From: Cyanophora paradoxa CCMP329
Taxonomy: Eukaryota; Plantae; Glaucophyta
Length of the DNA stretch: 64,000 nucleotides
Direction: 5' to 3'
Assembly (NCBI GenBank): GCA_004431415.1
Contig: QPMI01000549.1
Location: forward strand, 1-64,000
Shown here: piece after piece, positions 5,432 to 50,312 of the stretch
Numbering within the stretch: position 1 is the first letter of the stretch
How the letters are laid out: each line of letters starts with the position of its first letter
The notes under the pieces: generated by a model
Database searches by the model: none
Told to the model about the DNA's origin: nothing
What the model saw: only the letters and a program-made list of their open reading frames with translations
Program-made: the position numbers and the translations under genes

Positions 5432-5444
5432 AGATTCATTTGGG

Positions 5445-28789: not shown

Positions 28790-31700
28790 CATGGCAAGCC
28801 GAAGGGCGTGGAAGACCCAGGAGAGGTGCGCGGCGCTCGCCCCCCCCCCCCCCCCCCCGGCCGCGGGTCATGCTTCGTAAACCCTGCAGCTTACGGGCCG
28901 CTCTCCAGGATATCGAACGAGTGTGGTATATTTACCACTGCCCCCCGCAAGGTCGATGCGCTCGATGTACCAGGTGAGAATTTATATATAAAGATTTATA
29001 TTCTCAGCTCTTATATTAGGCCCGCGCTCTCTTAACATGATCTGGCTGCACGCAGGCCCGATTTCCCGCAATGGGATTGCACATCCCGATGCACGTGCCA
29101 GCAGTGCGTGGAGGCGCTCTCACCGGCTGCCGGGCCGACGGCGCGCTTCTGCGCCGACTTCGGCCACCACCTGGAGGCAATGATCCTCATCAGAACGGAC
29201 GATAACAGCCGGGGCCTCAGCCTCTGCTTGGCCGAGTGGCAGGTTCGTGCACTCCGCGACACTTCCTGTTCACGATCACACCTGGCACGCTGATCTGACA
29301 AGCCATGGCGCGTGTCAGAGCGAGCTTGAAGACTGCGTCGCAAAGCGGGGCACGGAGGGCCTAGCGTCGGTTGCCCTCGCCCTGCGCCTCGCCCGCCACT
29401 CCTACAAACTCGGCTTAAAGCCACATGCCCTAGAGCTCTACCGGGTGCTCTCCCTGACCCCAAAACACCCCGACACTATCGTGATTATCGTGAGTCAACC
29501 CGTGCATACAGCGCTTCCTCGCGCCCCGCCTGTTGGAGAATCTCGAAGAGCGGCGGGACGAGCTCCTTGGCACCGTCTCTTCGGACGCTCTCATCATTCA
29601 CGTGAACCTGTACGCGGCCCTCTGCTTCGATTCCAAGGCCGACACCGACCTCGCCGCTGCCAAGAAGGCGTTTTTGGTTTGCCGACTCTCCGCTGAATCC
29701 ATCATCACTTAATGAGTCACCGCCGATAGAATCACTCGCCGCCGATAGATGGATTTATATAGATTCCGCTGATTAAATCTCTCTGTATTCCAGGCCGGAC
29801 TGGGCATCATTCGGCAGCTGCAGCAAGCGCTTCTTCTGGACGCCAACAATGACTATCGCGAGATACGTATACTGGACTTGCACGCGCGTACGTGTGGTAC
29901 TTTCTGGCGCCTTGCAGCAGTGTCCCTCTGCCTAAAGGAGCGAGAAGAAGCGTGGAAGTACATTCAGGTTCTTACTTAACATTGCTTTCCGTCATGTGAG
30001 CTTATTTTTTATTCACGCACGGCGTGCAGCTAGCGGTGAAGAGCCACCAGGACTCGGACATATACGCGAAGGACGAGCACAGAAGTCAACTTCGGCGGCT
30101 CACGACCTCGAGCTCGCGCTGTTGCTTGTCGGGTAACATCGTCGTGAATCTCGCGGCGCAGTATGACGCTGCAGGCCTTCGAAGCAAAGCGGGAGAGATC
30201 TTTCAGGCGCGTGCGGCCTCAAGGTTAACGTTGTCGATCGCGTATCGACTTGATCGTTTTGCGGATCGCAGCTGAATTTGGAGATCGCGGAGCAGGCGTG
30301 CCAGGAATGCAGCGAGAAAAATGTTCTAGTTGATGCATTGTATTCACTTGGAAGTTATTACTTGGACACGGATGCGAGGGCGGACCGAGCCGAATCATAC
30401 CTGAAGGTTGGCTCAGCTTCATGCAGGAATCTAGCGCGATTGATGCCGCTCATTCTCTCTCACCGTGCAGCGCGCGTTGATCGAAGCAGAGCGAAGGTTT
30501 GAGTACGAAAAATCAATCCAGACGGACCTCGCGGTTATCCTGCACAACCTTGGCATCGCGTGCATGAATAACAGCCGCTTTGGCGAGGCCGCGACATTTC
30601 TCCGTGTACGCTGTTCTGGATTGTTTCCGATGTGTGTGGACACCCCGGCCAATGACGCGATTGCCTGCAGCGTGCCCTTGACATTTATGAAGAATTGTAC
30701 GGGCTGGTGCACAGTACAGTCGAGCACGCCCTGGCTGATTCAAATAGGCTTGTCACCGAGGATCCGCGGAATTATTTCTATAAAGCCTACTACGGCCAGG
30801 CAAGTCGCCAAAAACTCCGAATTCCAATGCGCTCTGCGAGGCTGATCATGATGCATGTATATGCATGATATTCGATGTTCATGTCAGAAACTTCTCGCCT
30901 TCATCCAGCAGGCAGGGAGAATGCCGGAATGCGTCAGCGCAGGCAACATGCCCCTGGCCGACTTTGTCAAAGTGAGTCTGCCCCTCAGGGCCTCAATCCA
31001 TCGCGAATGGGGTTTCGATCAAATTAAATGTTCATGGAATTCGTTCACGCAGGTGGTGGAGCGTGATCTTGCACGCTGTCGCCGGTTGTCTCTCGATCGC
31101 AAGGTCCCACATGACCGACTGCAGCTGTCGAGCAAGCTGGAGGAGCGGAAGCGAGCTCGGGAGGACGCAAAGCGGGTGGAGGCGGAGCGGGAGCGGGCGC
31201 GGCGGGAGGCTGAGCGCGCTGAGCGAGCCGAGCGCAACGCCGCGGATAGGGCATGCACATTTCGCTGCTGTCTCAAATCTACGATGTCGATAGTGCACTG
31301 ACGGCGCGAGCAGGAAGCAGCTCTCAAGAGCATGAACGCGTCCAATTGGGCCCGAGCCCGCCAGATTTTGAGCGCTCTGCTGAAGGTTTGGCCCTTCGCC
31401 TTCATCTTTCGGCGTTGAAGTTTTCTCTCGCCATCGCTGATCGGACTGGACGCACGTGCAAAGCGGTCACCCGATGATGTGGAGGCACGCCTGCTCCGCA
31501 TTGGTGCGCTTCTGTTTCTCTCAGTTAGTTCACGACGCTGCCGGCGCCTCAAACCCCAAGCAGGGTGCATGGCGGGAGCGGGCCAGCTGGAGGCAGCATT
31601 ACGGGAGGCAGAGGCCTGGGAGCGCGAGCTTGTCCCCACGAACTCTATATCTGCGACGGCCGCGGATTTGCTCGCAAAGTAAGCCGCCTGATTGAACCTG

Positions 31701-33279
31701 CCATCTTTGCTTACCGCAGCTGGCGGCGGCAGAGTCCGGCAGGAGCGTCAGAAGGCAGAGGCTGCGCTCCGTGAGCGGCGGGAGGCCGAAGAGAGGGCGG
31801 CGGAGGAGGCCCGCCGCCTCGCGGTCGCCGAGGAGCAGCGGCTCGAGGAGCGGCGCCGGGAGGAGGCGCGGCGCCGGGAGGAGGCGGCGCGGCGGGCGGC
31901 GGAGGAAGATCGGCGGAGGGCGGAGGAGGAGCGGCGTCGCCAGCACGCGGAGCTCGCACAGCGTCTGCGGGAGGTGAGGCTGGAGGCCGCTGACATCAAT
32001 GCAGCGGTGGCTCCGGCGGGCGATTGCGCGGAGCAGCGCCGGCGCCCGTGCACACGTGCCCACCCTCTGCTCAGTCGAGCGCGGCCTCACTCACCCACGC
32101 AGGTCCGAGCCAACAGCCCCACCTGCGGCCACCGCCGACGCACCCCCTTCCGCTCTGGAAGAGGGCGTGCTCGAGTGCGCCATTTGCCTGGAGTCGGCGC
32201 CTGCCGCTGGCGGCCCCTCCGCCGTATCTCTCCCCTGTGGCCGTGCGCCCCGCTCCGTCGGGCCGCCCCTATAATCCACCGCTCGCCGACGTTGACAACA
32301 CGCCGCCGCAGACCGCTTCCACGGGCGGTGCATCGCGACGTGGCGGGCGAGCCCGCTGGGGACCAGCTGCCCGGAGTGCCGCGCCCCTTTCTCCCCTGCG
32401 AGAGCCACTCCTGACCCCGCGCCCCCAGAAGCCCTCCCTGCCGCCCCTGCACCCGCCGCCCCCACAGCCGCGGGCTCCGCCACCGGCGCCCTCGAGCTCG
32501 CTCCTGTCCCAGCGCCGGCGGCACCCGTGCAGGCCGGCCCCGGCCCTCTCCCCATCGAGGAGCTGGCTGGGGAGCTGGATGGGGCGCACCATGCGGCCCC
32601 TTCCATCCCGTCGGCGGCCCCTGTCTCCTCCGCTCCGCCGGCCCCTGCCACTTTCGAATTCGCACCCCCCACCTGGCTCGCCCCTGCCCCTCTCTATCCC
32701 GCCCTCTCGTTCGCCCTACCCCCTCCTTATCCACCCGGCCCCTCCGCCCCGCTGCCGTACCCCCCTCCGCCTCCTGCGTCTGCACCCCTCCCGGAGACGC
32801 CTCCCGGCTACCCCCGGGTGGCTTCCTCGGCGCCGGCTACCCCCGCTTCCGCCCCTCTTCCTCCGGCGGCTTCTCCCGTCGCTCCCGCTCCGCTTGCCGC
32901 GCCTGGCGCGGGGCCACCGGGCTTCCTCTTCCCTCCGACCGTCTCTGCCGGCCTTGCGCCGGCCCCGCCCCTTGCCGCCCTGGCACCGTACCCCTGCCCT
33001 CCCGCAGCCGGTCCCTTCGCCCCGCTGCCGTATCCGCCTGTGCTCCCTGGGTACGCCCCCGCTGCGCGCGAGGGGAGGGCCCTGGGGTTCTTTCCCGCCG
33101 CCGGCCGCCCCCCGCTCGCCCCGTCTTCTGCTCCGACGGCCGCCTCCTCGTCCTCCGCGCCCCGTCCCACGCGCCCCTACCTGCCCCCCGGCGGCCCCCC
33201 GGCCCGCCCCACGCGCCCCTACGACCCCTTCAACCGCGGCGCCGGCGCCGGCCCTTCCCCAGCCTCGCCCCCGGCGTGA
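28790..33279 (+). CDS. TPR / coiled-coil / RING-H2 putative E3 ubiquitin ligase, paralogue A (start uncertain, probably further upstream)
   Basis: Exons WDCTSRCTCQQC..FC; TPR-like VDALYSLGSYY and LAVILHNLGIAC; E/R/A coiled coils; RING-H2 CAIC..CG|HRFHGRC..W..CPEC (32176-32379); Pro-rich tail to TGA at 33279. Confidence 0.8.
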
Positions 33280-34859
33280 TGCTTCCGTAGCCAATTTATA
33301 CGTACTGTTCGATAGCTTCTATTTCGATTTCGAGATCGAATTGGTGGTCGGAATCAATATTGCGCATGCCCACAGCTAGCCTAGTAGAGCTCGAGAGATC
33401 ATCGGATGAATTCGAAGGAGGAGCTCGATCGAGAGTTCGGAGCTCGATCGCGAGGCCAGCAGCAGCGGGTATGCAACTGCAGCGCGGCGCGCGGGGCCGG
33501 GCCGGGCTCAGCGGCTAGCTATAGCTAGAGCGCTCGAACACTGTGACAGGGAATTCGAAGCTCAAAACGGTGGGGGGGGGGGGGGGGGAGGGTATGGGTG
33601 CACTCGGCTCACTGAGTGCGTCGGTCGCACTCACTGAGTACGCAATCCCTCGGTGAGCGAGCTGGATCAGTGCGTCATTCTCAGTGCCTCCTGTTGCCGC
33701 CGGGGCGCCCGGCCACACTCTGCGCGGAGCGAGCTCGAGGTGCGCATCGGCAGCGAGCGCGCGGCCGCCGCGGCCGCGGCCTGCCGCCGACATGGCTGGT
33801 AGCGCCTCGAGATCGATGCAGATCCAGGCCTAGGAGAGAGCGCGCGCCGCTGCGCAATTGCAACCGCAACCACGTGTAACCGGCGATCGTCCACGTCCAC
33901 GAACGAGCGCCGACCACGGCGTCGATCCAGGTGAGCGTTCGGAACCGCCGGCGTGCGCCCCCACGCGCGCCCGGCGTGCGCGGTGCTGCGAGTCGCTAGG
34001 CCGCGCGCGCCGGGCGCCCGCGCGTACGCGTGGCCGGCTTCTGGGGCCGGCCATTCGATTCTCATCATATCAATCGCGCAGGCGTTCCGAAGTTCTGCGC
34101 GGAGGGCGGCACGCCAGACTCATTTCACGGGGCGCCGATCCGGGATCCAGGTGAGCGTTGGCATTCGGATCTAGGCCTAGGCCTGCTACGGCGCGCGCCT
34201 CCGCGCGCGCCCGGCGCGGCGCTGCGCCGCGGCCGCGGCCGCGCGTGCGCGGGATGCCGGGCCGCGGAGTTTTAGGGCCGCGCGTGACAACGGATCACAG
34301 TATCACACGATCGAGCTGCCATACATATGCCGCACCGGCGTCAAGTTCGGGCAGAGACGCAAGAAGCTCACGATGATCAGAAGGTACACGCGCGCTCGCA
34401 GCTTCCCCGGGCGACGGCCCAGCAGCGCTAGCGCTAGCCGGCCAGCTGATCATTGGATCAAACAAGGATTCAGCTGCAGAGGAGGGTCCGAGCGCGAGCA
34501 TCCAGCATAATCAGCTGCAGGCGCCGCCGGCCGCGGCAGCGGCCCCCGCACCTTTCGTCTTCAGCGCTGGTGGCCGCGCTCCCCATGTCCAGGTGCTTTT
34601 TAAGTGTACCCCTTGAACTGAAGTGCTCGTCTGTGCACTCAGATATTAATTCCACCCTTCCGCCGCGGGGCAGAAGGGTCAGCAGCAGCCGCCCCCGGCG
34701 CCGGGTCCTTTCGTATTCAGCTTCGAATTCAGCGAGAGCGCTTTTCAGGAGGTTGTAATTGTGTCCTGCCACCTGATGCTTTACTCTGCAGCTGACGGCG
34801 AGGCTTTCAACCATTCGCGCAGCAGAGCACGCGCACGCTGCCGTGCGGCGGGGGGCAGG

Positions 34860-37800
34860 TGAAAGAGCACGGCGAGGGGCAGGCAGCGCAAGCCCGGGAG
34901 AAGGACGAGGAGGAGCTCGAGGACCGGAGCAGGAGCGCGGGCGGGAGATACGAGGCGGGCGACGAGGCCGAGCTCGAGGCGTGCGGAGAGGGCGAAGGCG
35001 ACGGCGATCGCGAGGGATGTGGTGCACGTGGGCAGGTGCCCGCGGTGCCTTCAGCGTTAACGTCTCCGAGACCGCACCTGGCCTTCGCGCTTCGAATTCC
35101 CCTGACTGTCATTCAAAATGATTTATTTATGCGTATGCCTGGTGCATTGTACAGGAACTGGATACGGATACGGACTGCCGACGCGCTGAGTGCCTCAGGC
35201 CTAGGTGCGTCGAGCGGCCGAGCTCCGTATTGTTTGCAGTATCCAGCTGCTGCAGGCCTAGGGTCCCCGGATCGGCGATGGGGAGGCCTAGCGCTGAGAA
35301 TTCGAACGATTTCCTTCTAGTTCTAGATCTAAACCTGGATATTGTTAAGGTTATGACATCTGATTGCCTTCTCCCTGTCGCGCAGCCAGGAGCCCCACCC
35401 CATCTTGCGGCTGCCACCCCATCAGTCGGCCACGGGGCCGCCGTGTCAGCAGCGGACGCCCCCGGAGCCAGCGCCTCTCGCGCTCGCTTCGAATTCTCAG
35501 GTGCATGCTTATTCTAGCCTGTTAGCCTGTTATCTCTCTGATGGCGAGGATTGTGTGTTCTGCGCATGCACCTGTACATGTGCAGGGCATGCGCACACGC
35601 ACACAGTCCAGTGGCAAGGAGGACCAGGTGGAGGACGAGCACCGTGAGAGCCGGGGTGGGGAGGGCGAGGAGAGCGATGAACTCGAGGAGGACGGCGGCC
35701 CGGGCGAGGGAGATCGCGGGGGCGAGGAGGGGGAGGAAGGAGAGGAAGACGAGCCCTCTGACCCGGAGGAGGGAAGCGAGGGCGACCACGAGGACGACGG
35801 AGAGGTGCCGCGCTTCACTTAAGCCGTGAAGCTTTCCTTTGTCAGGGGAGCGTCTTGACATCGCATTCAGGGATCAGAAATATCTTGCGATTGCGTTGAA
35901 TGCCTCAGGTGCGTCCGACCGTATTTTATTTCTATATATACACTCTGGTCATGATTATGTGGGTTCGTCGACATCCTGCCGCGCATATGCGCAGCCCCGA
36001 GCCCCGGCCCTGGGCCTGCGAGTACCGCTGCACGTGCGAGCAGTGCGAGGAGGCGCGCTCTCCGACGGCTGGCGCGGCGGCCGGCTTTTGCGAGCATTTC
36101 GTGGACTTTTTCGAAGACACGGAGGTGCCCGAATGCGGCACCGCAGATGCTGACAGCTGCAGGGCTCGCTGGCAGGTATGCGTTATAGAATTCTTTCGTT
36201 TCAAATTCAGAGCGTAGACCCATCGTTTTGATCACAATATCCGTGGCCGCAGGACGAGCTGGACGAGTGCGTGGCGAAGCGGGGCGAGCAGGGCCTGGCC
36301 TCGGTCACTTACGCCCTCCGGCTTGCAAACCTCTTCTTTGGGTACGACATGAAGTCGGAAGCACGCGCGCTTTACGAGGTGTGTTGAAGCCTTATTTATA
36401 TATTCAATGTCAATTGGATGCCTTTTCATCTCACGATCAAGCGCAGTGCTTTCTTGCGCCCCGTCTTCTGGATCCGGACGAAAGGAGGCGGGGGGAGCTC
36501 CTCGGCGCCGTCTCACCAGACGCTTTAGAAGAGCACGCGCAGCATTACGGTGTTACGCACTTGGCCGCCGGAGATTTTGCCTCCGCCAAACAAGTGTATC
36601 AGGTGCGACAGCGAGCCAACGTCTCCAATTCGTTCAGAATTATTGTAGAGCACAATTTTAACTTTATATCGAGAATCCTAGGGTCTACGTCGATTAATCT
36701 CGACTTCGTCTGCAGGCTGCGCTCGACATTTCCATGCGGCTTGCGAAGGGCCGATATGCCGCCGACATGCTCGGGATTCTATCTAGAATCTGCTTGATGT
36801 TGAAGGAGCCGGAAAACGCTTGGCGATACCTCCAGGTGCGCCTGCTGCAACTATCGTGTGGATTGTAATTTCGCGCTCTATGTTTCGTTGGCTCAGCCGC
36901 TTCTCTACTATAAATAGCAGCTATATATATCTATCGCACTATCTAAATCTCTACTATTGATATTTAATGCACTCATGTACTCGCAGTTGCACCTACAGAG
37001 CGAATGCAATCCAAGAAGAAACCGCTGCCATGAAGAGAAGTTTCTTATCCACATGAGAAATCTGGCTGAACAATACTTGGACGCGGGCCTCCAGCGCGAG
37101 ATGGAACCAATTTTGAAGGCGCGAAGTTTACTCCAGCTAGTGTTCTGTGAATGTGTCCCTCGACAAAACGCGTACGGTTCTCTTACATGTTATTTACGAT
37201 TGCGTACACGCAGCTGTATCTGGAGAGCGCAGAAGGGGCTTGCGAGACGTGTCTGGAAGCCAATGTCTTTGGCGTGGCGCTAAACGCGGTTGGCGTCCTC
37301 GCCATGAATGCAGGCCTCGGTCTGGATAGATCCGAGTCTTATCTGAAGGTTATATAATTACCGAAAATAGACGCTACGTATATACACAGTCTCGCTGACC
37401 ACTTGCAAAACTATCACAGCGCGCACTCGCCGAAACGAAGAAGAGGCTTGGAGGCGAGACGGGTGAAGCACTAGCAGTCGTCCTGTGCAATCTCGGCGTG
37501 ATGTTTCATGGAACACGACGCTATGCAGAGGCTGCTGATGTTCTTCATGTTTGCGATTTCCGTCCTTGTTTTTCTAGCTGTAGATCCGATTAACATCGCC
37601 GATTAATTAATATTTTGCAATTGCAGCGCGCATGCATCGTGCACGAGGCAACTTTCGGACTGGCTCACGAGGGGATGGAACAAGTCCTGAAGAGTCTCTT
37701 TCTGGCACTCTCCAGAATGCGATTCCAAGATCTTGATCAAATGCAATCGCTGCTCGAGTTTTATTTGCAGGTGGGCTGCTCGTTTTCATGTGCACGTGCG

Positions 37801-40800
37801 AAATGATCGCGAATTATATGTGTTCATTTAATTAGCTACAGGCGCACGTGTAGCCTTCAGAGGCGCTGACACCACGTGTCAGAAACAGTTGGCTTTCACC
37901 AAGCTGACGGGAAAGGAGCCTCCGCAAGGCCTAGATGGCCTTGAAGTGAGAAACGCGATTGCGATCCATTTCGACCGCTTCAATCGTTTTGCGATCCCGA
38001 TCGCGATTAATTTCTTGTTCAGGCGATGGGGCGCGCATCTCTTGTTCTCTCAGCGCTAGCGGCACCTGCAGCTGCGCGCGCGAGCGAAGGAGGCCGGCTC
38101 TCGGGCAAGCTGGAGGAGCGGCGGAGGAAGCTGGAGGAGGAGAGGCGCGTTGAGGCGGAGCGCCAGAGGGCGCGGCAGGAGGCCGAGCTCGCCGAGCGCG
38201 CCGAGCGCGACGCCGCGGACCGCGTGCGCCTTTTCCAATCCGCGGCGCCTCGGTTCCTTTGATTTATTTCGCCCCTGTGCGATTTCCGTTTGGCGAGCAG
38301 AAGGCGGCAGTAAAGCACATGCGAGAGTCGAACTGGGCCCGAGCCCGCCAGCTGCTGAACGCCCTGCTCAAGGTGCGAACCGGGCGGTCTTTCATTCTAC
38401 TTTGATGCGCACTGCGACCTTCTGACGTCCCGGGCCGTTGTCGCAGCGGTCGCCCGGGGATGTGGAAGCGCGCCTGCTCCGCATCCGTGCGCTCTTCGAT
38501 GTGATTATTTCACAATTTCCTGGTCGTCCATGTAAGTAATATCGCTCCCCGAGCAGAGTGCATGGCGGGGGCGGGCCAGCTGGAGGCGGCCGCGCGGGAG
38601 GCGGAGGCCTGGGAGCGCGAGCTCGCCGCGGCGGCCTCGAGCTCAAGCTCGGATGCCAGCATCGATCTGCTCGCAAAGTGCGCTGCGGCTGCCTCATGTG
38701 TTTCTATCTATTATAAACTATTCTGTGCTTCTCTAAGGGCTCCGTGTCTTGGAGGGCTAAGATCGAGCGCAGGGTCCGGCAGGAGCTGCGGCGGACGCGG
38801 GCCGCGCTCCAGCTCCAGCAGCGGCGGGAGGCCGAGGCCGAGGCCGATCGCGAGAGAGAGGCGGCGGAGGAGGCGCGCCGCCTCGCCGAGGAGCAGGCGC
38901 GGCGCGACGAGGAGGCCGTGGCCGAGCGGAGGGCGGCGGAGGAGGCCCGCCGCCTCGCGGATCAGGAGCGGCTCGAGCAGGAGCGGCGCGACGGGGTTGA
39001 GAGGCGCGGAAAGGAGGCCGCGAGTCAGGCGGCGGCGGAGGCCGAGCAGCAGAGGCGGGCAGCCGATCACGAGGAGGCCGCGCAGGCGCGACTGCGCGTG
39101 CTTTGCATCCGTGCGTTCTTGTTAATTGCAATGGAATATTAATACTCGTTTTTAATTAACCGAAACCTCACGCCCCGCGGCCGTCCAGAGTGCACGGCGG
39201 GGGCGGGGGCGAGCGACTTGGAGGGCGCCGCGCGGGAGGCCGAGGCCTGGGAGCGTGAGCTCGCAGCCTCGGATGCCGCGACTGATCGCGATCTGCTTGT
39301 GAGGTGCGCCATTTAAATTGCAGAAATTATATATTGCATCGCCGGAGGTCTGAGCCTCAGCTTTAGGGTTCGGCAAGAGCGGCAGAAAGCGGAATCCGAG
39401 CTTTTCCAACATGTAGAGCGGGAGCTCGGGGCTGAGATGAGGGCCGCCGAGGGGGCTCGCCAGCGGGCGGAGGATCCGGAGCAGCGGACGAGGCAGGAAC
39501 TCGGAGTGCGCGAGGAGGAACGATTCCGAGAGGAGGCTGCAAGGCGCGCGTACGCGGCGCAGGCTGCGCAGCGACGAGCTCTCGCGTCCGTGCCCGCCGG
39601 GTGCGCCCAGTTCCGGATCCCACCAAGACGCTTATGCCCTCGGCGTGCGATTAAATCGTGCCCCGGCGCCTGCATTCGCAGCTGGCGATCGTGGCAGGCC
39701 TGCAGGCACTTTGCGCGGGGCTTTTGCGCGTTCGGCGCCCGCTGCCGGTTTGCGGTCCCGCCCCCCGAACTCAGAGCGCGAGCCTCACGCCTAGTCGCCC
39801 CGGCCCGCCTGCGCAGGTTCTCCCACGCGTACGGCTACATGGGCGCGTCTGCGAGCCTGGTGCGGCGCGAGGAGGGCGACAACTCGAGAGGCCGGCTGGA
39901 GGCAGGGTGGCGGCGCGACGAAGAGCAAGCCATACCTTACGGCGACGAAGTCCGAGATCGGTACCTCTGCCAGCACCTCTGCCAGCCTCTCTAGACTGAC
40001 ATCTCTAATCATGGCATTCGGCCCAGCCATGACAGGAGTTGTTCTGATGGTTCTGATGGTCATATGCGTGGCGCGCAGGCTCGGCGGCGGGGCGGCGGCG
40101 CCATCTGACGGCCCCACCCGCGATCGCGAGGCGGGCGAGTGCGCCATCTGCCTCGAGCCGCTGCTCTCCGGCTCTGGCCCCTCCGCCGCCCCCATCCCCT
40201 GCGGCCGTGCGCGGCAGATGTCGCCCGCTCTTTTGCCCTCCATCGGCGCTAACGGCCCGCTTCTGCAGACGAGGGTCAGTTCCACGCGCTGTGCATCGCC
40301 ACGTGGCGGGCGGACCCGATGGGCACCACGTGCCCCGCGTGCCGCGCCCCCTTCGAATTCGCCCCCGCCCTCTCCGCTGCCGCTTCCGCCTCCGCCTCCG
40401 GTCCCAGCGGCCCGCCAGCAGCGGCCTCCGCTTCGCGCGCCCCTCGCCCTGCTTCTGTCCCTCACCCGGCGGCCTGCTGCAGTGTTGAAGTTGACGCTGG
40501 CGCCTCCGCCGCTTCCTCTGCCTCGGCGTCGACGTCTGTTGGCCATGGCCTGGCGGCCGTGGCCGTGCCAGCTGTAGCCGCCGTCGATGCCGTCGCGCCG
40601 GCGCCGCATCTAGGGCTGCCGCCCGGCTTCTCGGCGCCCCCGTCCCTCCCGTGCCCCGCCGCCCCTACCGGGCCAGCCTCGAGCTCAGCGGCGGTTGCCG
40701 CCTCCGACTGCAAGTCTGAGGGGCCCCTCGATGGCCAGCCGCGGACCTCGGAGCTCGGCGGCCCTCCCTTTCCCCTCGAGCTCGCCTACGCTCCGCTCGC

Positions 40801-41548
40801 TTCTCATTCGGCCGCCCCGCCGGCCGCCTCGAGCTCCAGCAGCTGCAGGGCGGGGCCTGTAGCTGCACGCACCCCCTTCGAGCCGCCGGCCGCGTCGACG
40901 TCAACGTCGCGCTCGGGGGCCCCATGGCCAGCGCCCTCGAGCTCGAGCTCCCGGCCGCCCCTGCCCCCCGCCTCCTCGAGCTCCTCCCCGCCCGCGCCCG
41001 CCTTCCCGTACCCCGTTTCTCCCTCCGCCCCCCCAGCGTCTCTTCCCTCCCCGGTGCCGCACTCGAGCTCCTTCCCCGCCTACAGTGCAAGTGCTCCGCC
41101 GTACCCCCCCGTGCCTCTTTACTTCTTTGAGAACGCCACCACCCCGCCTGAGGGCGTGATCGGCCCCCTGCTGGATGCCGCGCTCCGCTATTACCCGCTT
41201 CCTCCCCCAGCGACGAGGCCTCTCCCCGCCCCCGCCGCGCCGGGCCCCATAGTGGTGCCTGCTGCGTCCGCCGGCGCCGCTCGAGTTCCACTTTCAGCTC
41301 CCCCTGCGGATGTGGCGCCCGGTGCCTGTGGCGGCCCCGCTCTTGCAGCCGTGTTTGCCGCCCCTGTCTTCCTGGATTCGCCCCCCGGCTACCCCCGGCC
41401 CTCAGCTCCGTCGGCAGCTGTGAACTCGGCACCCCGCCCCACGCGGCCGTACCTGCCCCCCGGAGGCCCGGTCGCCCGTCCCACGCGCCCCTACGACCCG
41501 TTCAACCGCGGCGCAGGCGGCCCCTCCCGCACCTCCCCGCCACGATAA
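34860..41548 (+). CDS. TPR / coiled-coil / CCCH / RING-H2 putative E3 ligase, paralogue B (start uncertain)
   Basis: Acidic exons, WACEYRCTCEQC..FCEHF, TPR exons colinear with A, a duplicated helix + coiled-coil module, CCCH finger CRHFARGFCAFGARCR|FSH (39701-39826), RING-H2 CAIC..CG|HEGQFHALC..W..CPAC (about 40140-40343), Pro-rich tail. Confidence 0.8.
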
Positions 41549-41810: not shown

Positions 41811-43092
41811 TTAGGAGCACACGGTGTACTCGCTTGGGTCGCTCTCCCCCTCGTTGGGGCTCCCCACGCACTTGCCGTCCTTCACGCAGCCGCCCACGAA
41901 CTTGCCGGCCCCATTCTCCCACTTGCAGCACGGCTCGTCCGGCTGCAGGCGCGGAAATCGCGATATCGATCAGTTTGCTTCTTTTGGAATGATCAGAATC
42001 GGAAGTATATATAAGAGACGGGCGCACCTTGCAGCAGCCGAACTTGTCAGCGTGCGTGCCGGCGCCGTGGCCGCAGCCTGGAGGGCAGCACTTCTGCCCG
42101 CTGTTGCCTGCGAGCGAAATTCGAATGCCCATATGCATCAAAATTGGGGGCAGTTATTATCAGCGCCCAGCAATCCGTGCCCCAAGCAAAGATCCCGGAA
42201 CGTACCGCGGCAGGGTCCGCCGGGCGTGCAGACCTCGTTGTCGTCTCCGCCGCCCTCGTTCTTGCACCTGCGAAAATACGCCTTGAATATTTTACGAACT
42301 TCGATCTTATCTTCGATCTTGGTAGGTTAAATTATAATCAATGCATATGTTTGAAACGCGATCGCAGTCTTTGCGCACTTGCCATTCTTGCAGACTTGGC
42401 CATCGGGGCAGCAGGTCCCCGCAGCACTTGCTCGGCTCGCAGCACTGCCCGTTGCAGCAGATTTTGCCGTCGGCGCAGCAGTCGGAGCCGCAGCACTCCT
42501 GATCTGCATACTCACCAGGGTTTTAATAGTTGTGTGCATGCAGATCAATTTATATTAAAAGCGTGACGCAAGAACCACGCACCGTTATTGCAGCAGGCGT
42601 GCTCGCAGCACTTCGGATGATCTGCGAATGAATCAGAGAGTCAGCTAGCACTGGAATTTGGCTAGTATACGTACTGCGAATGAACATGGCCATAAAATAT
42701 TGATTACAACACACATTTCGGACAGCAGCCGTCGCCATTCCTTCCGAAACCGCTGGGGCAGCAGACCTCTCCGAGCAAGATATCCTCTGCGAATTTGCGT
42801 TCAACTGCGATTAGCCACACGTAGCATCTCCCGCTGAAAGAACGGTATCGATTACCCTTGCGGCAGCAGTGATCGTCCCCCTCCGTGCAGCATTGCTTCA
42901 AGACTATATATATACGCAGGGCAGGCGGGAAGATTGGTTAGCAAGACGGCGATCGAGATAACAATGGATCTGCGAAGCGTGCGCACGGCCACACGCGGTG
43001 CCTCCGCACAGGCCCCCAGTCGCCGAGACCGCGGCGAGAACGGCCAGGGCGGCGGCGGCGAGGAGCAGCTTCTTCGCGACGGTCGAAGGCAT
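41811..43092 (-). CDS. Secreted cysteine-rich protein with paired-Cys (CC) repeats, multi-exon
   Basis: Signal peptide MPSTVAKKLLLAAAALAVLAAVSA; exons KQCCTEGDDHCCRK, EVCCPSG..GCCPK, HPKCCEHACCNN, QECCGSDCCADGKICCNGQCCEPSKCC, PDEPCCKWE..YTVCS* (TAA at 41811). One apparent homopolymer frameshift near 42420. Confidence 0.75.
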
Positions 43093-43210
43093 TTCGACTG
43101 CGCGCGAGCGGAACGCGGACCGTCGCTGGTTTAGAAAGCGAACGCAGTGAGGTCTTCTAGGCGCTGATTGATATCAGCGAAACTTTTGGATCGGAAAGAG
43201 CTCGAGGGTC

Positions 43211-43560
43211 GAATTCGAATTTCTAGGTAACCGCCCGCGAAACTTTCGCTCGTCGCGCGAGGAAGCATACTTGTACAATCTAAAATCATGAGCAACATGC
43301 GGGGCGCGCGGGGCGCGCGAAAAACGCGTAAGTGCAAAAGCGCGCGCGCCCAGATCCAAATCCCCGCGCGTCGCTAAGAGTCAGAAAGCGAGTGCAGCTG
43401 CAGAGAGTATCGGAGATAGGATCGAATTTCTAGGTGTCCTTCCGCAGAATTTTCGTTCGTCGCGCGCGAGATACTTAAAAAATCTAGATCTGTGCGAAAC
43501 GCGCGGGGCGCGCAGAGCGCGCGAAAAACGCGAAAGTGCGAAGGCGCGCGCGCCTGGAGG
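43211..43560. repeat. Diverged ~140-bp direct repeat upstream of the Cys-rich gene
   Basis: cgaatttctagg...tcgtcgcgcg...gcgcgcgaaaaacgcg.aagtgc.aa.gcgcgcgcgcc occurs at about 43216-43350 and 43424-43554. Confidence 0.7.
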
Positions 43561-44162
43561 GCCGACGTCGACGCCGGCGCGCGCGTCACTAGTACTCGCG
43601 CGCCCGCGCGGGCGCATATCGCTAGGACTGACGCTATAGCGATCACAAGCGGGAAGGCGCACCGGCGTGGAGCGAGATTGCCGATGAATTGGATGGAGTG
43701 CGAAGGTAGTTGGAAGGTGAAGCGCTTTTGGTCGCCCTGTTGGACCGAAGCCAAAAAAAGGCTGGAGAGCTTTAAGACGAGAGAGCGGGGATCTGGATCC
43801 GGAGGTGGTGGTATATATGGGTTGGTATAACAAGGGAGGTAAAACGAGCTTCGAGGGAGGACCAAGGCCCTCGCGATCGGCAGGCAGCCTATGATAGATT
43901 GATATGATAATTTGTATGAAGGGCGCCGGCCTTCCTTCGATTACCCCAAGTCCTTCCTTCCCCTCATCGCTTCCGAAGTTCCATGGCCAGTTGACGCCGG
44001 AGTTCCAGCTCTCCCCGGCGGCCCGCAGCGCCGGCGGCAGCGCCAGCGGCCCTTCCGCAGCGCCGGCGGCCCTTCCCGCACTTCCCCAACATGACGCGCT
44101 TTTGTGAGGGGGAATCGAAAGAAAAATTATCGGAGAGTCCGTATCAATTGGCTACGGAAGGA

Positions 44163-47100
44163 TCACGCCGGGGGCGAGGCTCGGGAAGGGACGACGCCGG
44201 CGCCGCGGTTGAAGGGGTCGTAGGGGCGCGTGGGGCGGGCCGGAGGGCCGCCGGGGGGCAGGTACGGGCGCGTGGGGCGGGGCGCGAAGGACGAGGAGGC
44301 GGCCGCGGGAGCGGGGGGCGGGGCGTGCGGGGGGTGGCCCGACGCGGGAAGGATCCCCGGGGCTCTCCCCTCGCGCGCAGCGGGGGCGTACCTAGGGAGC
44401 ACAGGCGGATACGGCAGCGGGGCGGAGGGACCGGCTGCGGGAGGGCAGGGGTACGGTGCCGGGCCGGCAAGGGGCGGGGCCGGCACAAGGCCGGGAGAGA
44501 GGGGGGGAGGGGAGGGGAAGCCCCGGGGCGGCCCCCCGCGAGGCTCGGCCAGCGGGGCGGGATTCGGAGCGGCGGGAGAAGCCACCGGAGGAAGAGGGGC
44601 GGAAGCGGGGGTAGCCGGCGCCGAGGAAGCCGCCCGAGGGTAGCCGGGGGGCGTCTCCGGATCCGGGAGGGGCCCATATGTATGGCCATACGCGGGAGGC
44701 GGAGGGGGGTACAGCAACGAGGCGGAGGGGCCGGGTGCATAGGGGTACGCTTCCAAGGGCGGCGGAGCAATGGAGACGGGGGGCGCCGACGGGATTGAAG
44801 GGGCCAGCACCTCGAAATTTAATGGGCCCAGCAGGGTGGATGCGACGGGAGGCGTCTCTTGGAAGTTGCCGACCGGAGCAGCGCCCGCAGGAGAGAAGGG
44901 AGCGCGGCACTGCGGGCAGCTGGTGCCCAGCGGGCTCGCCCGCCACGTCGCGATGCAGCGCCCGTGGAAGCGGTCTGCGGCGGCGTCAGTGAGCCTCGGA
45001 GCGGCACAGGGGCGGGGCGGGGCGCACGGCCGCAGGGGAGGCTGGCGGTGGCCGAACGCATGGGGGCAAGGCAGATGGCGCACTCGCCCTCTTCCTGGGT
45101 GGGGCCGCCGGGAGACGGCGCCGCCGATCCGCTAGCGCTGCGAAAGAAATTAGCCCGTACATATGCATAATAATAAAATCACGTAGGGGTAATCCGAGCC
45201 TCGCACCGGGTCTGGCGATCACCGGCCGCGGCCGCAGCAGCGCCTATCTTCCGCCGGCCCTGCTGCTCCTCACGCCGCTGCAGAACCTGCGAGCTAGCGC
45301 TGGCCCGCCGCTCCTCCTCCGCCCTCCGCCTGTCGTCCTCCGCCGCCCGCCGCGCCGCCTCCTCGAGCTCCCGGCGCCGCGCCTCCTCCCGGGGCCGCTC
45401 CTCGAGCCGCTGCTCCTCGGCGGCCGCGAGGCGGCGCGCCTCCTCCTCCGCCAGCGCGGCCTGCGCCTCGGCCTCGGCCTCGCGCTGCTGCTGCTCAAGC
45501 GCGGCCCGCGCCTTCAGCCGCTCTTCCCGCAGCCTGCCGCTGAACCTCAGCCCTCGAAGATAGAGATGTTGCAGCGTGAACGTGCATTAACGGAGCATTA
45601 GTATGACAAGAGAATTCGAAGGAAGGGCGGCGCACTTTGCGCGGAGATCGATGTTGGCATCTGAGCTTGAGGCCGCTGCGGCGAGCTCGCGCTCCCAGGC
45701 CCCCGCCTCCCGCGCGGCCGCCTCCAGCTGGCCCGCCCCCGCCATGCACTCTGCGCGCGGAGCACGATTACTTGAATGGACGCCCAGAAAATCTAGATCC
45801 TAGAGTGAATGGTAACGAAACGCTCACGGATGCGGAGCAGGCGCGCGTCCACATCCCCGGGCGACCGCTGCGAAGACGGTCCGGGACATCAGAAGGTCGA
45901 AGCGCGCATCCAATGGGATATCGCAATTAAGGGCGACGTCGAAATGCGCATCGATATATCAGATTAGACTTAAAGATAGAACTAAAGACCGCGCGGTTCG
46001 CACCTTGAGCAGGGCGTTGAGCAGCTGGCGGGCTCGGGCCCAGTTAGACTCTCGCATGTGCTGGACTGCTGCCTTCTGCTCGCCAAACGAAAATCACTCG
46101 GGGGAAGAATAATAAAGACGAGGCGCCGCGGAAACTGAAACTTGAAAGGGCGCGCACGCGGTCGGCGGCGTCGCGCTCGGCGCGCTCGGCGCTCTCGGCC
46201 TCCCGCCGCGCCCTCTGGCGCTCCGCCTCGGCGCGCCTCTCCTCCTCCAGCTTCCTCCGCCGCTCCTCCAGCTTGGTCGCGAGCCGGCCTTGTTTGCGTT
46301 CACGCGGGAGTGCAGGTGCAGGTGCAGGTGAAAGCGCGAGAGATGCACGCGCCATTGCCTGAACAAGATATAAATCGCAGTGGAGATCGCGAAACAATTG
46401 AAGCGGTCGAAATGGATCGCAATCGCGTTTTGCACCTCATGATCAAGGGCCCCTAGGCCTTCCGCAGGCTCCTTTCCCGTCAGCTTGGTGAATGCAATCT
46501 GTTTCTGAAACGTTGCAATTATATCAGCGTCATTGAAGGCTAAATCTATAGCTAGTTCTATAATCATGTATAGCTCGCGATCATTCGCACACGAGCGCAT
46601 GAAGACGAGCAGCCCACCTGCAAATAGAAATCGATCAGCGATCGATCCGGGACTTGCATTCTAATGAGTGTCAGGAAGAGTTTCGTTAGGTAATGTTCCA
46701 TCCCCTCGTGAGCCAGTCCGAAAGCTGCCTCCCGCATGATGCATGCGCGCTGAGTTGGAATCCGAGGATCGGTAAATCCTTTTTAAGCGACACTAACAAT
46801 GCATGGAAACCGCGCACACGAAGAGAAGCGGCGGCATCTTCGTAGCGCCACGCTCTAATGTACAGCGTGCCGAGATTGTTCAGGATGATTGCAAGCGATT
46901 CGGAGTCCTCTCGATCGGCTCCAGAGCTCCCCTCCGTTTCGGCAAGAGCGCGCTGTTTATTTTACAAGCAATCAGCCAATCAGCAATCAAGAGCGCGCTG
47001 TTCGATTTGCAAGCGACACGGCGATCATGCAATATTAATCATCGCAAGGTTGCTAATAATAATTATATATAAGGAACGGAATAGAAATGCGGTACCTTGA

Positions 47101-49056
47101 AATACGATTCGGCTCTCTCCAGGCAGAGGTCCGCCTCAGAGAGGAGGAGTCCGAGCGAGTTTAGCATCACGCCGAGGACATTGGCCTTCTGGCACGCCTC
47201 ACAGGCCCCTTCTGCGATCTCCAGATACAGCTGCGCATACATACACGATTGCTATAAAACGCGATAATCCAACTCTTTAATCCTAATAAACGGATGACGT
47301 TGAATTCGAATGCGGAGTACCGAAATAACGACTCCGAATAGAATTAACATGTACCAGTAAAGTCAGACCGATCGCACCTGTAGAATCGGTTCCGCTTCGC
47401 GATGAAGGCCCGCTTTGAAGTATGATTCTATCAGATGTTTGATATGCTTACAAACATTCTCTTCATGGCAGCAGTATCGTCGCTCTTCCCGTTGTAGCTC
47501 TTCCAGCTTGCTTTCGCGTCGTAGTTTCAACTGTGCGCCAAATATAATTATATAAGCCGATCCTTGAGGCAGCTTGGACACAAGTATATTGAAAAGAAGA
47601 AGAGAGAAGCACAGGCTCTATAATGACTGCGCACAAAAACGACAGCTGCAATGTACGTGCACACCTGCAGGTACTTCCAGGCGTTTTCGTGCTCCTTCAA
47701 TTTCATACAGATTACAGATAGACTCCAGAGCACGCAATTGGAACCAGCTCTTCCGGACGATCCGTTCACATGCCGCATGGAAATGTCGAGCGCAGCCTGC
47801 AGACAAACTCAATTAATCAATCACGTCGAGCTGTATAATTAATCAACGAAGACGAAGTGTCGAGCTGTATAATCAATCACGTCGACATCATGATCAATCA
47901 TAAAACAAATCGCCGACATCGGCTCGCACCAGGAACGTTTGTTTGGCTGAGGCATAATCTCCGGCGGCCGCATGCGTGTCTCCGTACTTCCGCGCAAAGT
48001 CGACAAGCGCTCCTGGGGAGGCGGCCCCAGAGAGTTCGCCCCGCCTCCTCTTGTCCAGAAGGCGCGGGGCGAGGAAGCGCTGCGCATGCACGATTAATAT
48101 TGAGCTGAGAAGGCTTGAATTTAAGCAGCAATCAATTGCACGTTTCCGTCGCATGCACATGCGCACCTCGTAGAGCGCGCGAGCTTCCGCCGTCATGTCG
48201 TACTTGAAGAGGAGGTGCGCGAGCCGGAGGGCGTAAGTGACCGAGGCCAGGCCCTGATCGCCCCGCCTCGCCACGCAATCGTCGAGCTCGCGCTGTGGCC
48301 ACGAATGTTGTGATCAAAACGATGGATCTATACATACTTTGGATTAGAAACGAAATAAATCCAATGTCAAACCTGCCAGCGAGCCCTGCAGCTGTCAGCC
48401 TGCGTGCTCGCGCGGTTTGGCGCAGCCATTGCTTCACAAAAGTTCACGAAGTGGGAGCAGAAGCCGGCCGCCGCGCCGGCCGTCGGAGAGCGCGCCTCCT
48501 CGCACTGCTCGCACGTGCAGCGGTACTCACAGGCCCAGGGCCGGGGCTCGGGGCTGCGCATATGCGGCAGGACGAACTTACATAATCATGTTTGAAGGGG
48601 ATATATAGAAAGAAAATACGATCGGATGCACCTGAGGCATTCAACGCAATCGCAAGATTTAGATGTGTCCGATTCCTGAAGGTGATGTCAAGACCTTCCC
48701 CCGATAAAAGGAAAGTGATGCGCGGCACCTCTTTGTCGTCCTCGTGACCGTCCTCGCCCCCTTCCTTCAAGGGCTCGCTGTCCTCGCCGTCCCCGCCCCC
48801 GCAATCTTCCTCGCCCGGGCCTCCGTCCTCCTCGAGCTCGTCGCCCTCATCGCGCTCCCCACCCCGGCTCTCGCCCTGCTTGTCCTCCTCGTCCTTCTCA
48901 TGGACACATGCATGATGCCGATCACGCGGTGGCGTTTGCCCCACGAGGCCTCCGTGTCCCGCCGGCGCCTCGAGCTCCTGCTTTCCCTTGCTCTCCCTCA
49001 GAGGGCGCGGAGGCGCTGGGGCCGGGATATAAGTACCCGGGGGGCGGCCGACGGCG

Positions 49057-49087
<31 letters not shown>

Positions 49088-49250
49088 ATCATGATTCGAT
49101 TGCCCGGGCTGCTGACAGGGCATGTGCACCCCCTCGCGCCCGCCATCCTCATCCTCGTCGTGATCGCTGTGATGACTCTGCTTGTGACGATTGCGATCAG
49201 ATGGTTGCCGCCGCCGCCGCCCGGGCCAGGCGGGCCGCGGTAGCGCTAAC
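44163..49250 (-). CDS. TPR / coiled-coil / RING-H2 putative E3 ligase, paralogue C (inverted; start uncertain)
   Basis: N-terminal exons nearly identical to B (PEPRPWACEYRCTCEQCEEARSPTAGAAAGFC). RING ECAICLAPMRSATASLPCG|HRFHGRCIATWRASPLGTSCPQC and tail closest to A. TGA at 44163. Confidence 0.8.
49058..49087. repeat. (CTG)10 microsatellite
   Basis: Read directly; would encode a poly-Q, poly-S or poly-A run at the 5' end of paralogue C. Confidence 0.9.
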
Positions 49251-49968
49251 ATGTGCGCATACACATTGTAAACGCACCAGCATCTTAAGCTTCTCGTGAT
49301 TGCGTGCCGATTTATATATATGATGAGGCGGCATGCATATGACGCTTCTGCCTAGATTCGTTTGACTCAGTGATGCGCCAGCTGCAGCTGCAGCCCCACG
49401 CATGCACATGCGCAGCTTGAGCAATTGGATGGCCGCGCCGCCGCGCGAGTGCGCGGAACGCCTGCGGCTTTGGTCAGGATGCCGGCCGCCGCGCGTGCAC
49501 GCGGCCGGCCGCAGCCGCGGCGCGGGCCGGGCCTGCGGCCGCGGCCGCGGCCGACGCCGACGCCGTTGGCGCGCGCGCGGCCGGCGCGGGGGCGCGCCGA
49601 AGGCCGGGCACGCGCCTGGAATCGCTCTGGAGCGAAGCGCCCGTCCCCAACTTGACCGCGCCGCGGTCTGCGGCGGCGCCCCGCGCGCGGCCGGCCGCGG
49701 CCCGCGGCCGCGCCGGCGCCGGCGCCGGCCCGTCCTAGCCTGGGCCTGCATCTGGTCGTGAGGCGAGCTCAACATGAAGATACCGCAGAAATCACGGGCC
49801 TTCGCCGCGCGCAGTCGACGTCCGCGACTGCGGGCTCCCGCTCCGCGCGCGACTGGCCTGGCCGGCGCGCGCGCCCGACACTTTTACTCAGCGGTAATTC
49901 TGCGCTGTCGTCAAAGGCGATAACTCCCCTCAAACCGGCGCTGTAGATCTCGCGCTGCAGCTGGCGCG

Positions 49969-50194
49969 ATGAGTCCCGTACTGTACCCCCGGCCCCTCCC
50001 TGGGTCGTACGCGTGGCTGCGAGCTCGAGGGCGGCCGCGGGGAGGGGGTTCCAGCATCCGCCTCGAGCTCGAGCCGCGCGCCCCGCCCGGGGCCCCGCGC
50101 GCCCCTACCGGTTGCCTGCAGCCCGCCCCGCGCGTCCCCGCGTCCCTTCGAATTCAACCCCTTCAACCGCGGCGCCAGCCCCGCCCGGAGCTAG
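49969..50194 (+). pseudogene. Degenerate remnant of the TPR-RING family C-terminal tail
   Basis: Reads PVLYPRPLPGSYA.. and then, after a frameshift, ASSSSRAPRPGPRAPLP..PP..PRPFEFNPFNRGASPARS*. Shares ccccttcaaccgcggcgcc with paralogues A and C. Confidence 0.55.
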
Positions 50195-50312
50195 AGGCTC
50201 CGAGTGCGTGCGCCCGCTCCCCCCACCAGTAGCCCGTACCCTGAAGCTGCGCGTATACGTACGCACGCGCCGTCCTGTCTTTGAACGGGCCGCGGGCGCA
50301 ACGGCGCGCCCC

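Follow-up and report, generated by a model that had tools for sequence, protein, structure and literature searches.

Three intron-rich genes of the glaucophyte Cyanophora paradoxa, termed here A, B and C, probably encode members of a modular RING-H2 ubiquitin ligase family about 30 strong and so far known only from this species. They lie within a 64,000-nucleotide stretch of contig QPMI01000549.1 (the window; Table 1), in which the sole flank given a name is an aconitase-family gene at ~26.1–27.8 kb.

Organization of the cluster

Genes B and C share ~72% nucleotide identity across blocks of 1.2–1.7 kb (E = 0), and the tails of A and C are 86% identical over 632 bases, a paralogy of A, B and C that, as judged from these alignments, is far beyond chance. 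In a global B/C alignment, introns 1–15 of the 17 introns of C coincide in position with introns of B, with GT..AG boundaries and one GC..AG. The exon series of A matches those of C and B with clean splice sites, and GC..AG introns occur in both A and B, one of them being common to the two genes at the same position. The GC content of introns is 0.46–0.54 as against 0.68 for exons, in agreement with the AT-richer introns described in the first-pass annotation of this DNA. The three full paralogues and degenerate fourth tail that it listed are all present, although the tail, real, is tiny (93 bases): it retains 73% nucleotide identity with the tail of A over 94 bases, interrupted by one 1-base and one 6-base indel, and no further family module was found near it.

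Table 1. Positions of the genes and their parts in the window
Feature	Position	Strand	Remarks
Gene A	28791..33279	+	Intron-rich paralogue, 18 inferred exons, ~1090 aa
A, first exon with ATG; second exon	28791–28825; from 28890	+	Inferred
A, variable TPR-like half, seven exons	29319..30799	+	Exon-by-exon alignment to B/C, 36–46% aa identity
A, conserved central TPR unit between two coiled coils	31314..31678	+	78–83% aa identity to B/C, dN/dS 0.18–0.30
A, RING-H2 CAIC..CGHRFHGRC..CPEC	32173..32391	+	Split by phase-1 intron 32243–32311
A, conserved C-terminal motif	~33160–33279	+	Counterpart of C motif
Gene B	34327..41548	+	Intron-rich paralogue, ~1600 aa including annotated N-terminus
B, second copy of 115-base central-TPR exon (internal duplication)	39189..39303	+	Matches the C exon in length and phase
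B, CCCH zinc finger CRHFARGFCAFGARCRFSH	39697..39825	+	Pattern completed over inferred intron 39748–39816
B, RING-H2 variant CGHEGQFHALC, two extra residues	40137..40356	+	Split by intron 40207–40268
B, conserved C-terminal motif	~41429–41548	+	Counterpart of C motif
Gene C	44163..49183	-	Public gene tig00021098_g18178, encoding protein P0002 of 1093 aa; 19 or more coding exons
C, Cys motif with a pair of CxCxxC units (SCDCVEC..WACEYRCTCEQC) spread over two exons	48373..48675	-	
C, variable TPR half, kinesin-light-chain-like TPRs	46618..48292	-	Family profile and fold matches
C, conserved central TPR unit, three small exons	45636..46075	-	95% aa identity to B, dN/dS 0.25
C, RING-H2	44895..45085	-	Intron 44975–45027, RNA-supported (junction 44974/45028)
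C, conserved C-terminal motif APRPTRPYLPPGGPPARPTRPYDPFNRGAG	44163..44282	-	Also in A and B
Relic of fourth tail, frameshifted	50094..50186 (93 bases)	+	Likeness to tail of A

Gene models

Gene C is transcribed. Three RNA-like runs show twelve of its GT..AG junctions, of which the DNA run has none; the other junctions were placed by frame, depth and contig ends. The 18 exons so defined form one frame, in which the Cys motif is followed by the TPRs and coiled coils and finally by a canonical RING-H2; this 5′-incomplete model has 1063 codons in one open frame and equals the annotated 1093-aa protein save for one alternative exon segment. Because the junctions are seen in RNA only and one frame runs through all 18 exons, TPR and RING are parts of the same gene, as the first-pass annotation had them, and not of separate ones. 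C is annotated but unnamed in the public gene set, with MLSHH as its N-terminus.

The open frame of A comprises 1071 codons over 17 exons with intact splice sites (GT/GC..AG, at positions as in C); its 5′ end and every junction were placed from frame and splice sites, without RNA, and no protein model of A is among the matches of any family search. That of B comprises 1390 codons over 21 exons, also with intact splice sites; its 3′ introns were placed without RNA, and fifteen introns are backed by conservation with C. The annotated N-terminal model of B (P0001) maps to 34327–35906, and the public annotation splits the gene, cutting it short after 499 aa. The GC..AG introns of A and B may be the reason for this broken annotation.

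Domain architecture

The domain order proposed initially for all copies stands for the Cys motif, TPR-like exons, coiled coil, TPR, coiled coil, RING-H2 and Pro-rich tail, but the acidic linker is missing from the model of A, whose predicted N-terminus is short and contains one full CxCxxC motif only, and among the three genes a CCCH finger was found in B and in neither A nor C. B opens with a long acidic disordered N-terminus, followed by the Cys motif, TPRs, a coiled coil and the central TPR; the central-TPR/coiled-coil unit is then duplicated (84% nucleotide identity between 39186–39267 and 38554–38629) and precedes the CCCH finger, the RING-H2 variant and the tail. Four cysteines of the Cys motif (C23, C25, C28 and C43) are the same in every aligned family member, and the motif has no Pfam match.

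The nature of the variable half is indicated by a search of PDB sequences with the family profile, which retrieves the TPR domains of the kinesin light chains KLC1 and KLC2 (E values of 4e-12 to 2e-10). The AlphaFold model of C, computed from a shallow alignment of 8 sequences, has a mean pLDDT of 76.5 and consists of ~20 helices paired in hairpins and two helices of ~50 residues; used as a Foldseek query, it matches the TPRs of KLC, LGN and OGT with a probability of 1.0 and TM scores by target of 0.45–0.55, KLC and LGN being among the best. In single proteins the Pfam TPR scores fall mostly under cut-off (C: TPR_10, 25.5 versus 27.5), with some relatives above it (P0004, TPR_8, 34.4; P0017, TPR_12, 53.1), and the central TPR of C is near threshold for TPR_19/TPR_16.

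The RING-H2 zinc-ligand pattern is present in all three genes, as CAIC..CGHRFHGRC..CPxC in A and C and as a variant of non-standard H-x4-H spacing in B, whose two-residue insertion recurs in five other family members. The zf-RING_2 profile (PF13639) scores 34.6 bits in gene C (P0002) against a cut-off of 27.3, and 27–35 bits in relatives; scanned exon by exon, the RINGs of A and B give weak partial Pfam matches only. Family RINGs keep the Ile of CAIC, the Trp of CIxTW, the Pro and Arg of CPxCR and the eight zinc ligands. The CCCH finger of B reaches 21.1 bits with Pfam zf-CCCH (PF00642; cut-off 20.5) in the unspliced ORF, and those of the paralogues P0007 and P0010 30–45 bits, members of the family carrying none, one or two fingers. 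At the end of the Pro-rich tail, which holds PY-like and DPF-like short motifs, the terminal motif RPTRPY..DPFNRGAG (RPTRPY..RPTRPYDPFNRGAG) is constant in the family and present in its members alone; neither this motif nor the N-terminal double CxCxxC matches anything known. Pfam scans of the family gave no match to U-box, B-box or Rapsyn_N (PF10579, E up to 0.1), and none to NB-ARC, NACHT, TIR or death-fold modules, an NTPase domain being found in 0 of the 16 members scanned.

Distribution, selection and mosaicism

Queries with the N-terminal exons, the central TPR, the C-terminal motif and the constant half matched C. paradoxa proteins only. All 12 clusters returned by an exhaustive profile search are from Cyanophora, as are all matches of three word searches (13, 8 and 23). 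By these searches the family comprises ~30 loci and is so far known, in the databases searched, from C. paradoxa alone, in line with the lineage-specific expansion suggested at the outset; its tandem clusters occupy at least five contigs. The C. paradoxa genome paper (PMC6704402) does not mention it.

Amino-acid identity among A, B and C is 36–56% in the N-terminal half (up to 81% between B and C) as against 78–95% in the central TPR and 90–93% in the C-terminal motif. Together with proteins P0015–P0022, in which other TPR N-termini are joined to the same constant half, so that at least two kinds of N-terminal half exist, this contrast upholds the division into variable N-terminal and constant C-terminal halves drawn in the first-pass annotation. 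Pairwise dN/dS follows the same division, as had been expected there, being highest in the TPRs (0.39–0.72) and lowest in the constant parts (0.12–0.30; 0.12–0.15 for the C-terminal motif in pairs with B), and in each pair the RING, central TPR and C-terminal motif are well below 1. Local TPR windows reach 0.85–1.15, none clearly above 1, in a comparison of three coding sequences that gene conversion confounds; no region exceeds 1.

The two halves of C differ in their affinities. In the tail, amino-acid identity is 74% between A and C versus 38% between B and C, and in the N-terminal TPR region (RELDD..KYLQ) 70% between B and C versus 46% between A and C; a tree of the N-terminal module pairs B with C with a support of 100/100. 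On these comparisons C is a mosaic of a B-like N half and an A-like C half. The relic tail, the duplication within B and the mosaic C give substance to the birth-and-death envisaged for the cluster, and show recombination in it as well.

Proposed function and alternatives

In the model that we favour, the variable N-terminal TPR solenoid, of kinesin-light-chain type, would bind a substrate or ligand, and the two long coiled coils around the conserved TPR unit would mediate dimerization or oligomerization, in the way that those of CHIP, rapsyn and TRIM proteins do. The one or two CCCH fingers of a subset may bind RNA, and the Pro-rich disordered tail with its family-wide end motif may be a docking site for a partner or sorting factor shared by the family. 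The RING-H2, with its zinc ligands and E2-contact residues kept, is predicted to be an active E3. The conserved RING Ile, Trp, Pro and Arg are the contacts that activate E2~ubiquitin, and their conservation argues for catalysis. As to history, an inverted duplication may have given rise to B and C, A being the older paralogue; gene conversion or recombination between A and C would account for the likeness of their 3′ halves, B would have undergone its internal duplication, and one copy would have decayed to the relic.

Such a family might serve innate surveillance as a TRIM-like one-chain repertoire, in which TPR halves would detect non-self proteins and the RING would then ubiquitinate the target or trigger signalling; the CCCH-bearing branch would form an RNA arm reading non-self RNA, and tandem duplication with exon-level recombination would diversify the repertoire. 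We consider this role, RNA arm included, rather unlikely. It would fit the ~30 loci in one species and none elsewhere, the tandem clusters on at least five contigs, the two or more kinds of variable sensor half on a constant effector half, the recombination mosaics, internal duplication and decayed copy within the cluster, and the top dN/dS of the TPRs, with windows near 1. However, dN/dS is clearly above 1 in no region or window, the family has no NB-ARC, NACHT, TIR or death-fold module, and the same genomic pattern is known in expansions of F-box and BTB E3 adaptors, not all of which are immune.

It is improbable that the cluster consists largely of drifting or dying duplicates, with only some copies, such as C, functional and A and/or B unexpressed or pseudogenes: the B annotation that ends at 499 aa, the lack of a protein model of A among the search matches, the adjoining relic and dN/dS values of 0.7–1.0 in TPR parts would suit it, but the 1071 codons (17 exons) of A and 1390 codons (21 exons) of B are open with intact splice sites, GC..AG introns may account for the broken annotation, and all pairs have dN/dS values well under 1 in the RING, central TPR and C-terminal motif. 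A rapsyn-like scaffold, in which TPRs and coiled coils self-associate and anchor while the RING is mainly a binding or neddylation module, has the order of TPR, coiled coil and RING-H2 in its favour (PMC10494853), along with the long coiled coils, the Pro-rich tail with PY-like and DPF-like motifs, and the presence of rapsyn clusters among language-model look-alikes (0.84–0.85, a lead only). We hold it to be highly improbable, given the absence of Rapsyn_N, the MLSHH N-terminus of C, which lacks a Gly2 for myristoylation, and the family-wide conservation of E2-contact residues; many copies with variable TPRs also suit many targets better than one role.

Comparison with known systems

The modular RING-H2 ligase family proposed here does have analogues in rapsyn, CHIP and TTC3, contrary to the initial view that its architecture belongs to no named family. 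In rapsyn, a TPR array and then a coiled coil precede a C-terminal RING-H2 that has E3 activity (PMC10494853). Rapsyn (RAPSN) is, however, an N-myristoylated, single-copy animal protein of 412 aa with a Rapsyn_N domain, whereas the Cyanophora proteins are ~900–1600 aa long, number ~30 copies and have neither Rapsyn_N nor, at the N-terminus of C, Gly2, the two features on which identity with rapsyn was rejected; beyond the rapsyn plan they add a second coiled coil, the central TPR, the N-terminal Cys motif, the optional CCCH and the long Pro-rich tail. CHIP combines in one chain a TPR substrate-binding domain, a dimerizing coiled coil and a C-terminal, E2-recruiting U-box. CHIP/STUB1 is described as joining TPRs to an E3 (PMC4638040). 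Its three TPRs clamp chaperone C-termini, and it is a conserved single-copy gene whose U-box is zinc-free, unlike the zinc-binding RING-H2 of the family; with this RING-H2 and no U-box match, a CHIP-type U-box ligase was discarded. TTC3 and DZIP3 are animal ligases with N-terminal TPRs, coiled-coil regions and a C-terminal RING-H2. By description they resemble the family in these three elements, but they are not an expanded family, and they are absent from the profile and Atlas search results. Makorin, Roquin, RNF113 and Unkempt have the CCCH-RING combination, as do B and a subset of the family, in which CCCH lies directly upstream of the RING, but they lack TPR/coiled-coil halves, and in the family the CCCH is optional. 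An NLR/STAND receptor was set aside, with no NB-ARC/NACHT NTPase in the 16 members scanned.

Glaucophytes are one of three primary-plastid lineages, and to our knowledge next to nothing has been learned about protein turnover or defence in the group. Swappable TPR sensor halves on a constant coiled coil–RING–tail half would represent a compact example of E3 specificity diversification, with the terminal motif and double CxCxxC as testable handles on the family; if not defensive, its members would offer a ready panel of related substrate receptors for mapping. TRIM proteins combine a variable target-binding domain with a RING and a coiled coil. They too have expanded in tandem in particular lineages; their variable domain is the fastest-evolving part, and many of them act in innate immunity. 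Their domain order is the reverse of that of the family, in which the RING is C-terminal to the coiled coils, and they have a B-box and PRY-SPRY where the family has TPRs and no B-box match, on which grounds TRIM membership was rejected; if the Cyanophora family is defensive, RING-based surveillance would have evolved in a primary-plastid lineage independently of animal TRIMs.

Gene C encodes its TPR region and RING-H2 domain in one transcript

RNA data show that C, the minus-strand member of the three neighbouring paralogues A, B and C, is a single spliced gene running from an N-terminal TPR region to a RING-H2 domain. In a sequencing-run search, seven RNA-like runs share about one-third of the sampled words of 43900-50300, and four older runs share 39-89% (70-89% for the best two). 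Three RNA-like runs, as contigs, and one DNA run were aligned to 44000-49999. Twelve joints with CT..AC ends, corresponding to GT..AG on the minus strand, are each present in all three RNA-like runs and absent from the DNA run. One of them, 44974|45028, divides the RING, and unspliced ORFs therefore yield only fragments of a RING match. Placement of the other five junctions relied on splice consensus and reading frame, together with contig ends at 47930 and 46618 and the depth per bin. The resulting model comprises 18 exons from 48987 to 44163 in a single open frame of 1,063 codons and is identical to the annotated protein P0002 (1,093 residues) apart from a single stretch of 19 residues that is alternatively spliced; the genome annotation (tig00021098_g18178, three isoforms) adds an upstream exon. 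The claim of the first-pass annotation that TPR and RING belong to one gene thus holds for C on the basis of RNA junctions, a single frame and an annotated product; separate TPR and RING genes are not seen here. Two isoform differences were also observed: RNA contigs retain the whole 153 bases of one exon from which isoform t1 drops 57, and a later donor in t3 adds nine residues (VGCSSSCAR).

The structures of A and B were modelled by comparison. In a global alignment of B and C, the first 15 introns of C match B introns in position, 14 of them GT..AG and one GC..AG. In B, the 115-base central-TPR exon occurs twice, as does the coiled-coil exon that follows it, and the 3' part of the gene, compared with C, contains a CCCH finger completed across an inferred intron and a RING longer by two residues. 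A shows an exon series matching that of C and B with clean acceptors and donors; it most likely starts at ATG 28791, with a splice at 28825|28890, which gives a short N-terminus devoid of an acidic stretch. At the inferred junctions, A (1,071 codons modelled) and B (1,390 codons modelled) are open throughout, and B reaches about 1,600 residues with its annotated N-terminus. The annotated model g18175 covers the first 499 residues of B and stops inside an intron. Three donors of A and one of B are probably GC; two of these, at 30207 and 37119, occupy the same intron position, where C has GT. Such GC..AG introns may explain the shortened annotation of B and the lack of a protein model for A in every search. 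The joined models were used to check frames, to align the genes, to compute dN/dS and to build trees; whole-protein searches used the database entry of C.

Positions of features in the window
Feature	Position	Strand	Remarks
8-kb tandem duplication (span 3886-20183)	5128-12178 and 13139-20183; 3886-5130 and 12176-13442		~99% identity
84% GC stretch, one per copy	10-12 kb; 18-20 kb
150-base short internal repeats of the 8-kb copies	near 4829-5431 and 13139-13442
Aconitase-family gene	26138-27782	+	Pfam Aconitase, E 4e-42; one exon-sized ORF; directly upstream of A
Gene A	28791-33279	+
Probable GC..AG introns of A	30207, 30800, 31251	+
Gene B	34327-41548	+	annotated N-terminus starts at 34327
Probable GC..AG intron of B	37119	+
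Second central-TPR exon of B	39189-39303	+	coiled-coil exon follows from 39367
RING variant of B	40137-40356	+
Direct repeat	43215-43554		~135 bases, 79% identity; convergent B-C intergenic region
Gene C	49183-44163	-	annotated start codon near 49183
Exon shortened in isoform t1	47378-47530	-
Later donor of isoform t3	46590-46617	-
Relic tail	50094-50186	+	73% identity over 94 bases to end of A (nucleotide search)
Pro-rich coding-like repeats	52870-53493		tandem array

Domain content and predicted structure

Pfam searches with single exons of A, B and C returned almost nothing, because introns split the RING and the TPRs. In full-length database proteins of the family, zf-RING_2 exceeds its curated cut-off (34.6 against 27.3 for C), TPR families score near or above theirs, and CCCH fingers exceed theirs in a subset. 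Consistent with a TPR assignment, a family profile covering the first 580 residues hits KLC1 and KLC2 TPR domains in the PDB sequence set (E 4e-12 to 2e-10). The AlphaFold model of C residues 140-720 (mean pLDDT 76.5) displays paired helices, a 52-residue helix, three helices corresponding to the central TPR and a further helix of 50 residues, and its top Foldseek matches are the TPR solenoids of KLC, LGN, OGT and CTR9. At the N-terminus, the Cys motif consists of two CxCxxC units, and four of its cysteines are invariant in the family alignment; a Tesmin/CXC-type domain was considered and rejected, as the motif has no Pfam match to any family.

Family comparison shows that the RING retains all zinc ligands as well as an Ile, a Trp, a Pro and an Arg. 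In other RINGs these four residues touch and activate the E2, and by analogy they would do so here. A variant, CGH-xxxx-H/C-xx-C, in which the spacer from zinc ligand four to ligand five is longer by two residues, occurs in B and in the relatives P0007, P0016, P0017, P0019 and P0022, with Cys instead of His as fifth ligand in P0007 and P0022; since it is common to several members, it represents a subfamily trait rather than decay. In A, B, C and most relatives, the last 40 residues contain a doubled RPTRPY followed by DPF (NPF in the relic), which recalls, purely by resemblance, short endocytic or WW-type docking motifs.

Variable and constant parts, and the mosaic composition of C

The TPR regions have diverged far more than the central TPR and the C-terminal motif. 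When B and C are compared in sliding windows, dN/dS rises to 0.85-1.15 within parts of the TPR and is never clearly above 1. The expected direction, with a relaxed TPR and a constrained RING, is thus borne out, with no clear sign of positive selection.

Conservation between paralogues
Region	Identity A-C / A-B (aa)	Identity B-C (aa)	dN/dS
TPR regions	36-46%	56-70%	0.39-0.72
Central TPR	78-83%	95%	0.18-0.30
C-terminal motif	90-93%	90%	0.12-0.15 in pairs with B; 0.43 A-C

Pairwise values indicate that C resembles B from the Cys motif through the central TPR and resembles A in its second coiled coil, RING and tail (identity 74% A-C against 38% B-C, with tracts of low dS). The tree of the N-terminal module pairs B with C (100/100 support), and family members from other contigs are at least as close to this pair as A is. 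As the tree from RING to C-terminus gives no resolution, the mosaic nature of C rests on the pairwise values. A similar modularity is seen in relatives P0015-P0022, which share the central TPR, coiled coil, RING and tail and have other TPR N-termini lacking the Cys motif and the LASV..RLA or FLAPRL signatures.

Genomic setting and extent of the family

The window is GC-rich, with exons at about 0.68 GC and AT-richer short introns at 0.46-0.54. Its comparison with itself shows extensive paralogy across 28.7-50.2 kb: B and C align in opposite orientation at about 72% nucleotide identity in blocks of 1.2-1.7 kb, A and C at 86% over 632 bases of their 3' ends, and A and B through shorter matches. 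The reported fourth, degenerate tail proved real and small: its match to A spans the RPxRPY..PFNRGA motif, and indels of one and six bases break the frame. It was found by nucleotide search only, tblastn of tail peptides against the window being swamped by Pro-rich noise; when central-TPR and RING modules were searched against the window for further remnants, matches beyond the three genes were no more than noise. Apart from the aconitase-family gene, long ORFs of the flanks at 21-25 kb and 50-61 kb have no Pfam match. Elsewhere in the window, the 8-kb tandem unit reflects a segmental duplication of very recent date or else an artefact of the assembly, and a short direct repeat and a Pro-rich array were also noted.

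A profile built from two TPR-like exons in the N-terminal part of each of A, B and C, with the C row read through an in-frame 87-base intron, retrieved 12 clusters from 1.84 billion representative proteins (10 with E below 1e-10), all EukProt entries from Cyanophora paradoxa. The central TPR of C gave 13 matches, its C-terminal motif 8, and a 14-member profile of the constant half 23 among the 8,000 best candidates, again all from C. paradoxa. Profile and word searches, in which glaucophyte sampling is thin, list no match outside this species. Together the searches give about 30 loci among the matches listed, with tandem groups of at least five on tig00021127, four on tig00000204, three on tig00000670, two on tig00021094 and three in the window, in agreement with the proposed lineage-specific expansion.

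Proposed function and comparison with known systems

The best-supported reading is that A, B and C belong to an expanded family of self-contained, predicted RING-H2 ligases, whose TPR halves would pick targets, whose coiled coils may assemble the ligases, and whose CCCH-bearing branch probably also binds RNA. The cluster grew as copies were duplicated and inverted, paralogues recombined with one another, and one copy decayed. The genomic pattern is compatible with a possible immune-type role, but also with ordinary substrate-adaptor families.

CHIP combines TPR, coiled coil and U-box; TTC3 contains TPRs and carries its RING-H2 at the C-terminus. With rapsyn, they provide precedents for a domain architecture that the first-pass annotation did not recognise from any named family. 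In rapsyn, seven TPRs and a coiled coil precede a RING-H2 that has E3 activity (PMC10494853), an order like that of the present family, and rapsyn clusters are among the family's nearest language-model look-alikes, with scores below 0.9 that make them leads only. Membership in the rapsyn, CHIP, TRIM or NLR families was rejected, as the defining features of each are lacking. The C. paradoxa genome paper makes no mention of RING, TPR, ubiquitin or zinc-finger families (PMC6704402), and the family itself was found nowhere described in the open-access literature searched. Nor did that literature yield a description of its characteristic features: two coiled coils flanking a conserved TPR, a double CxCxxC head, a conserved terminal motif, and an expansion of this size and modularity.
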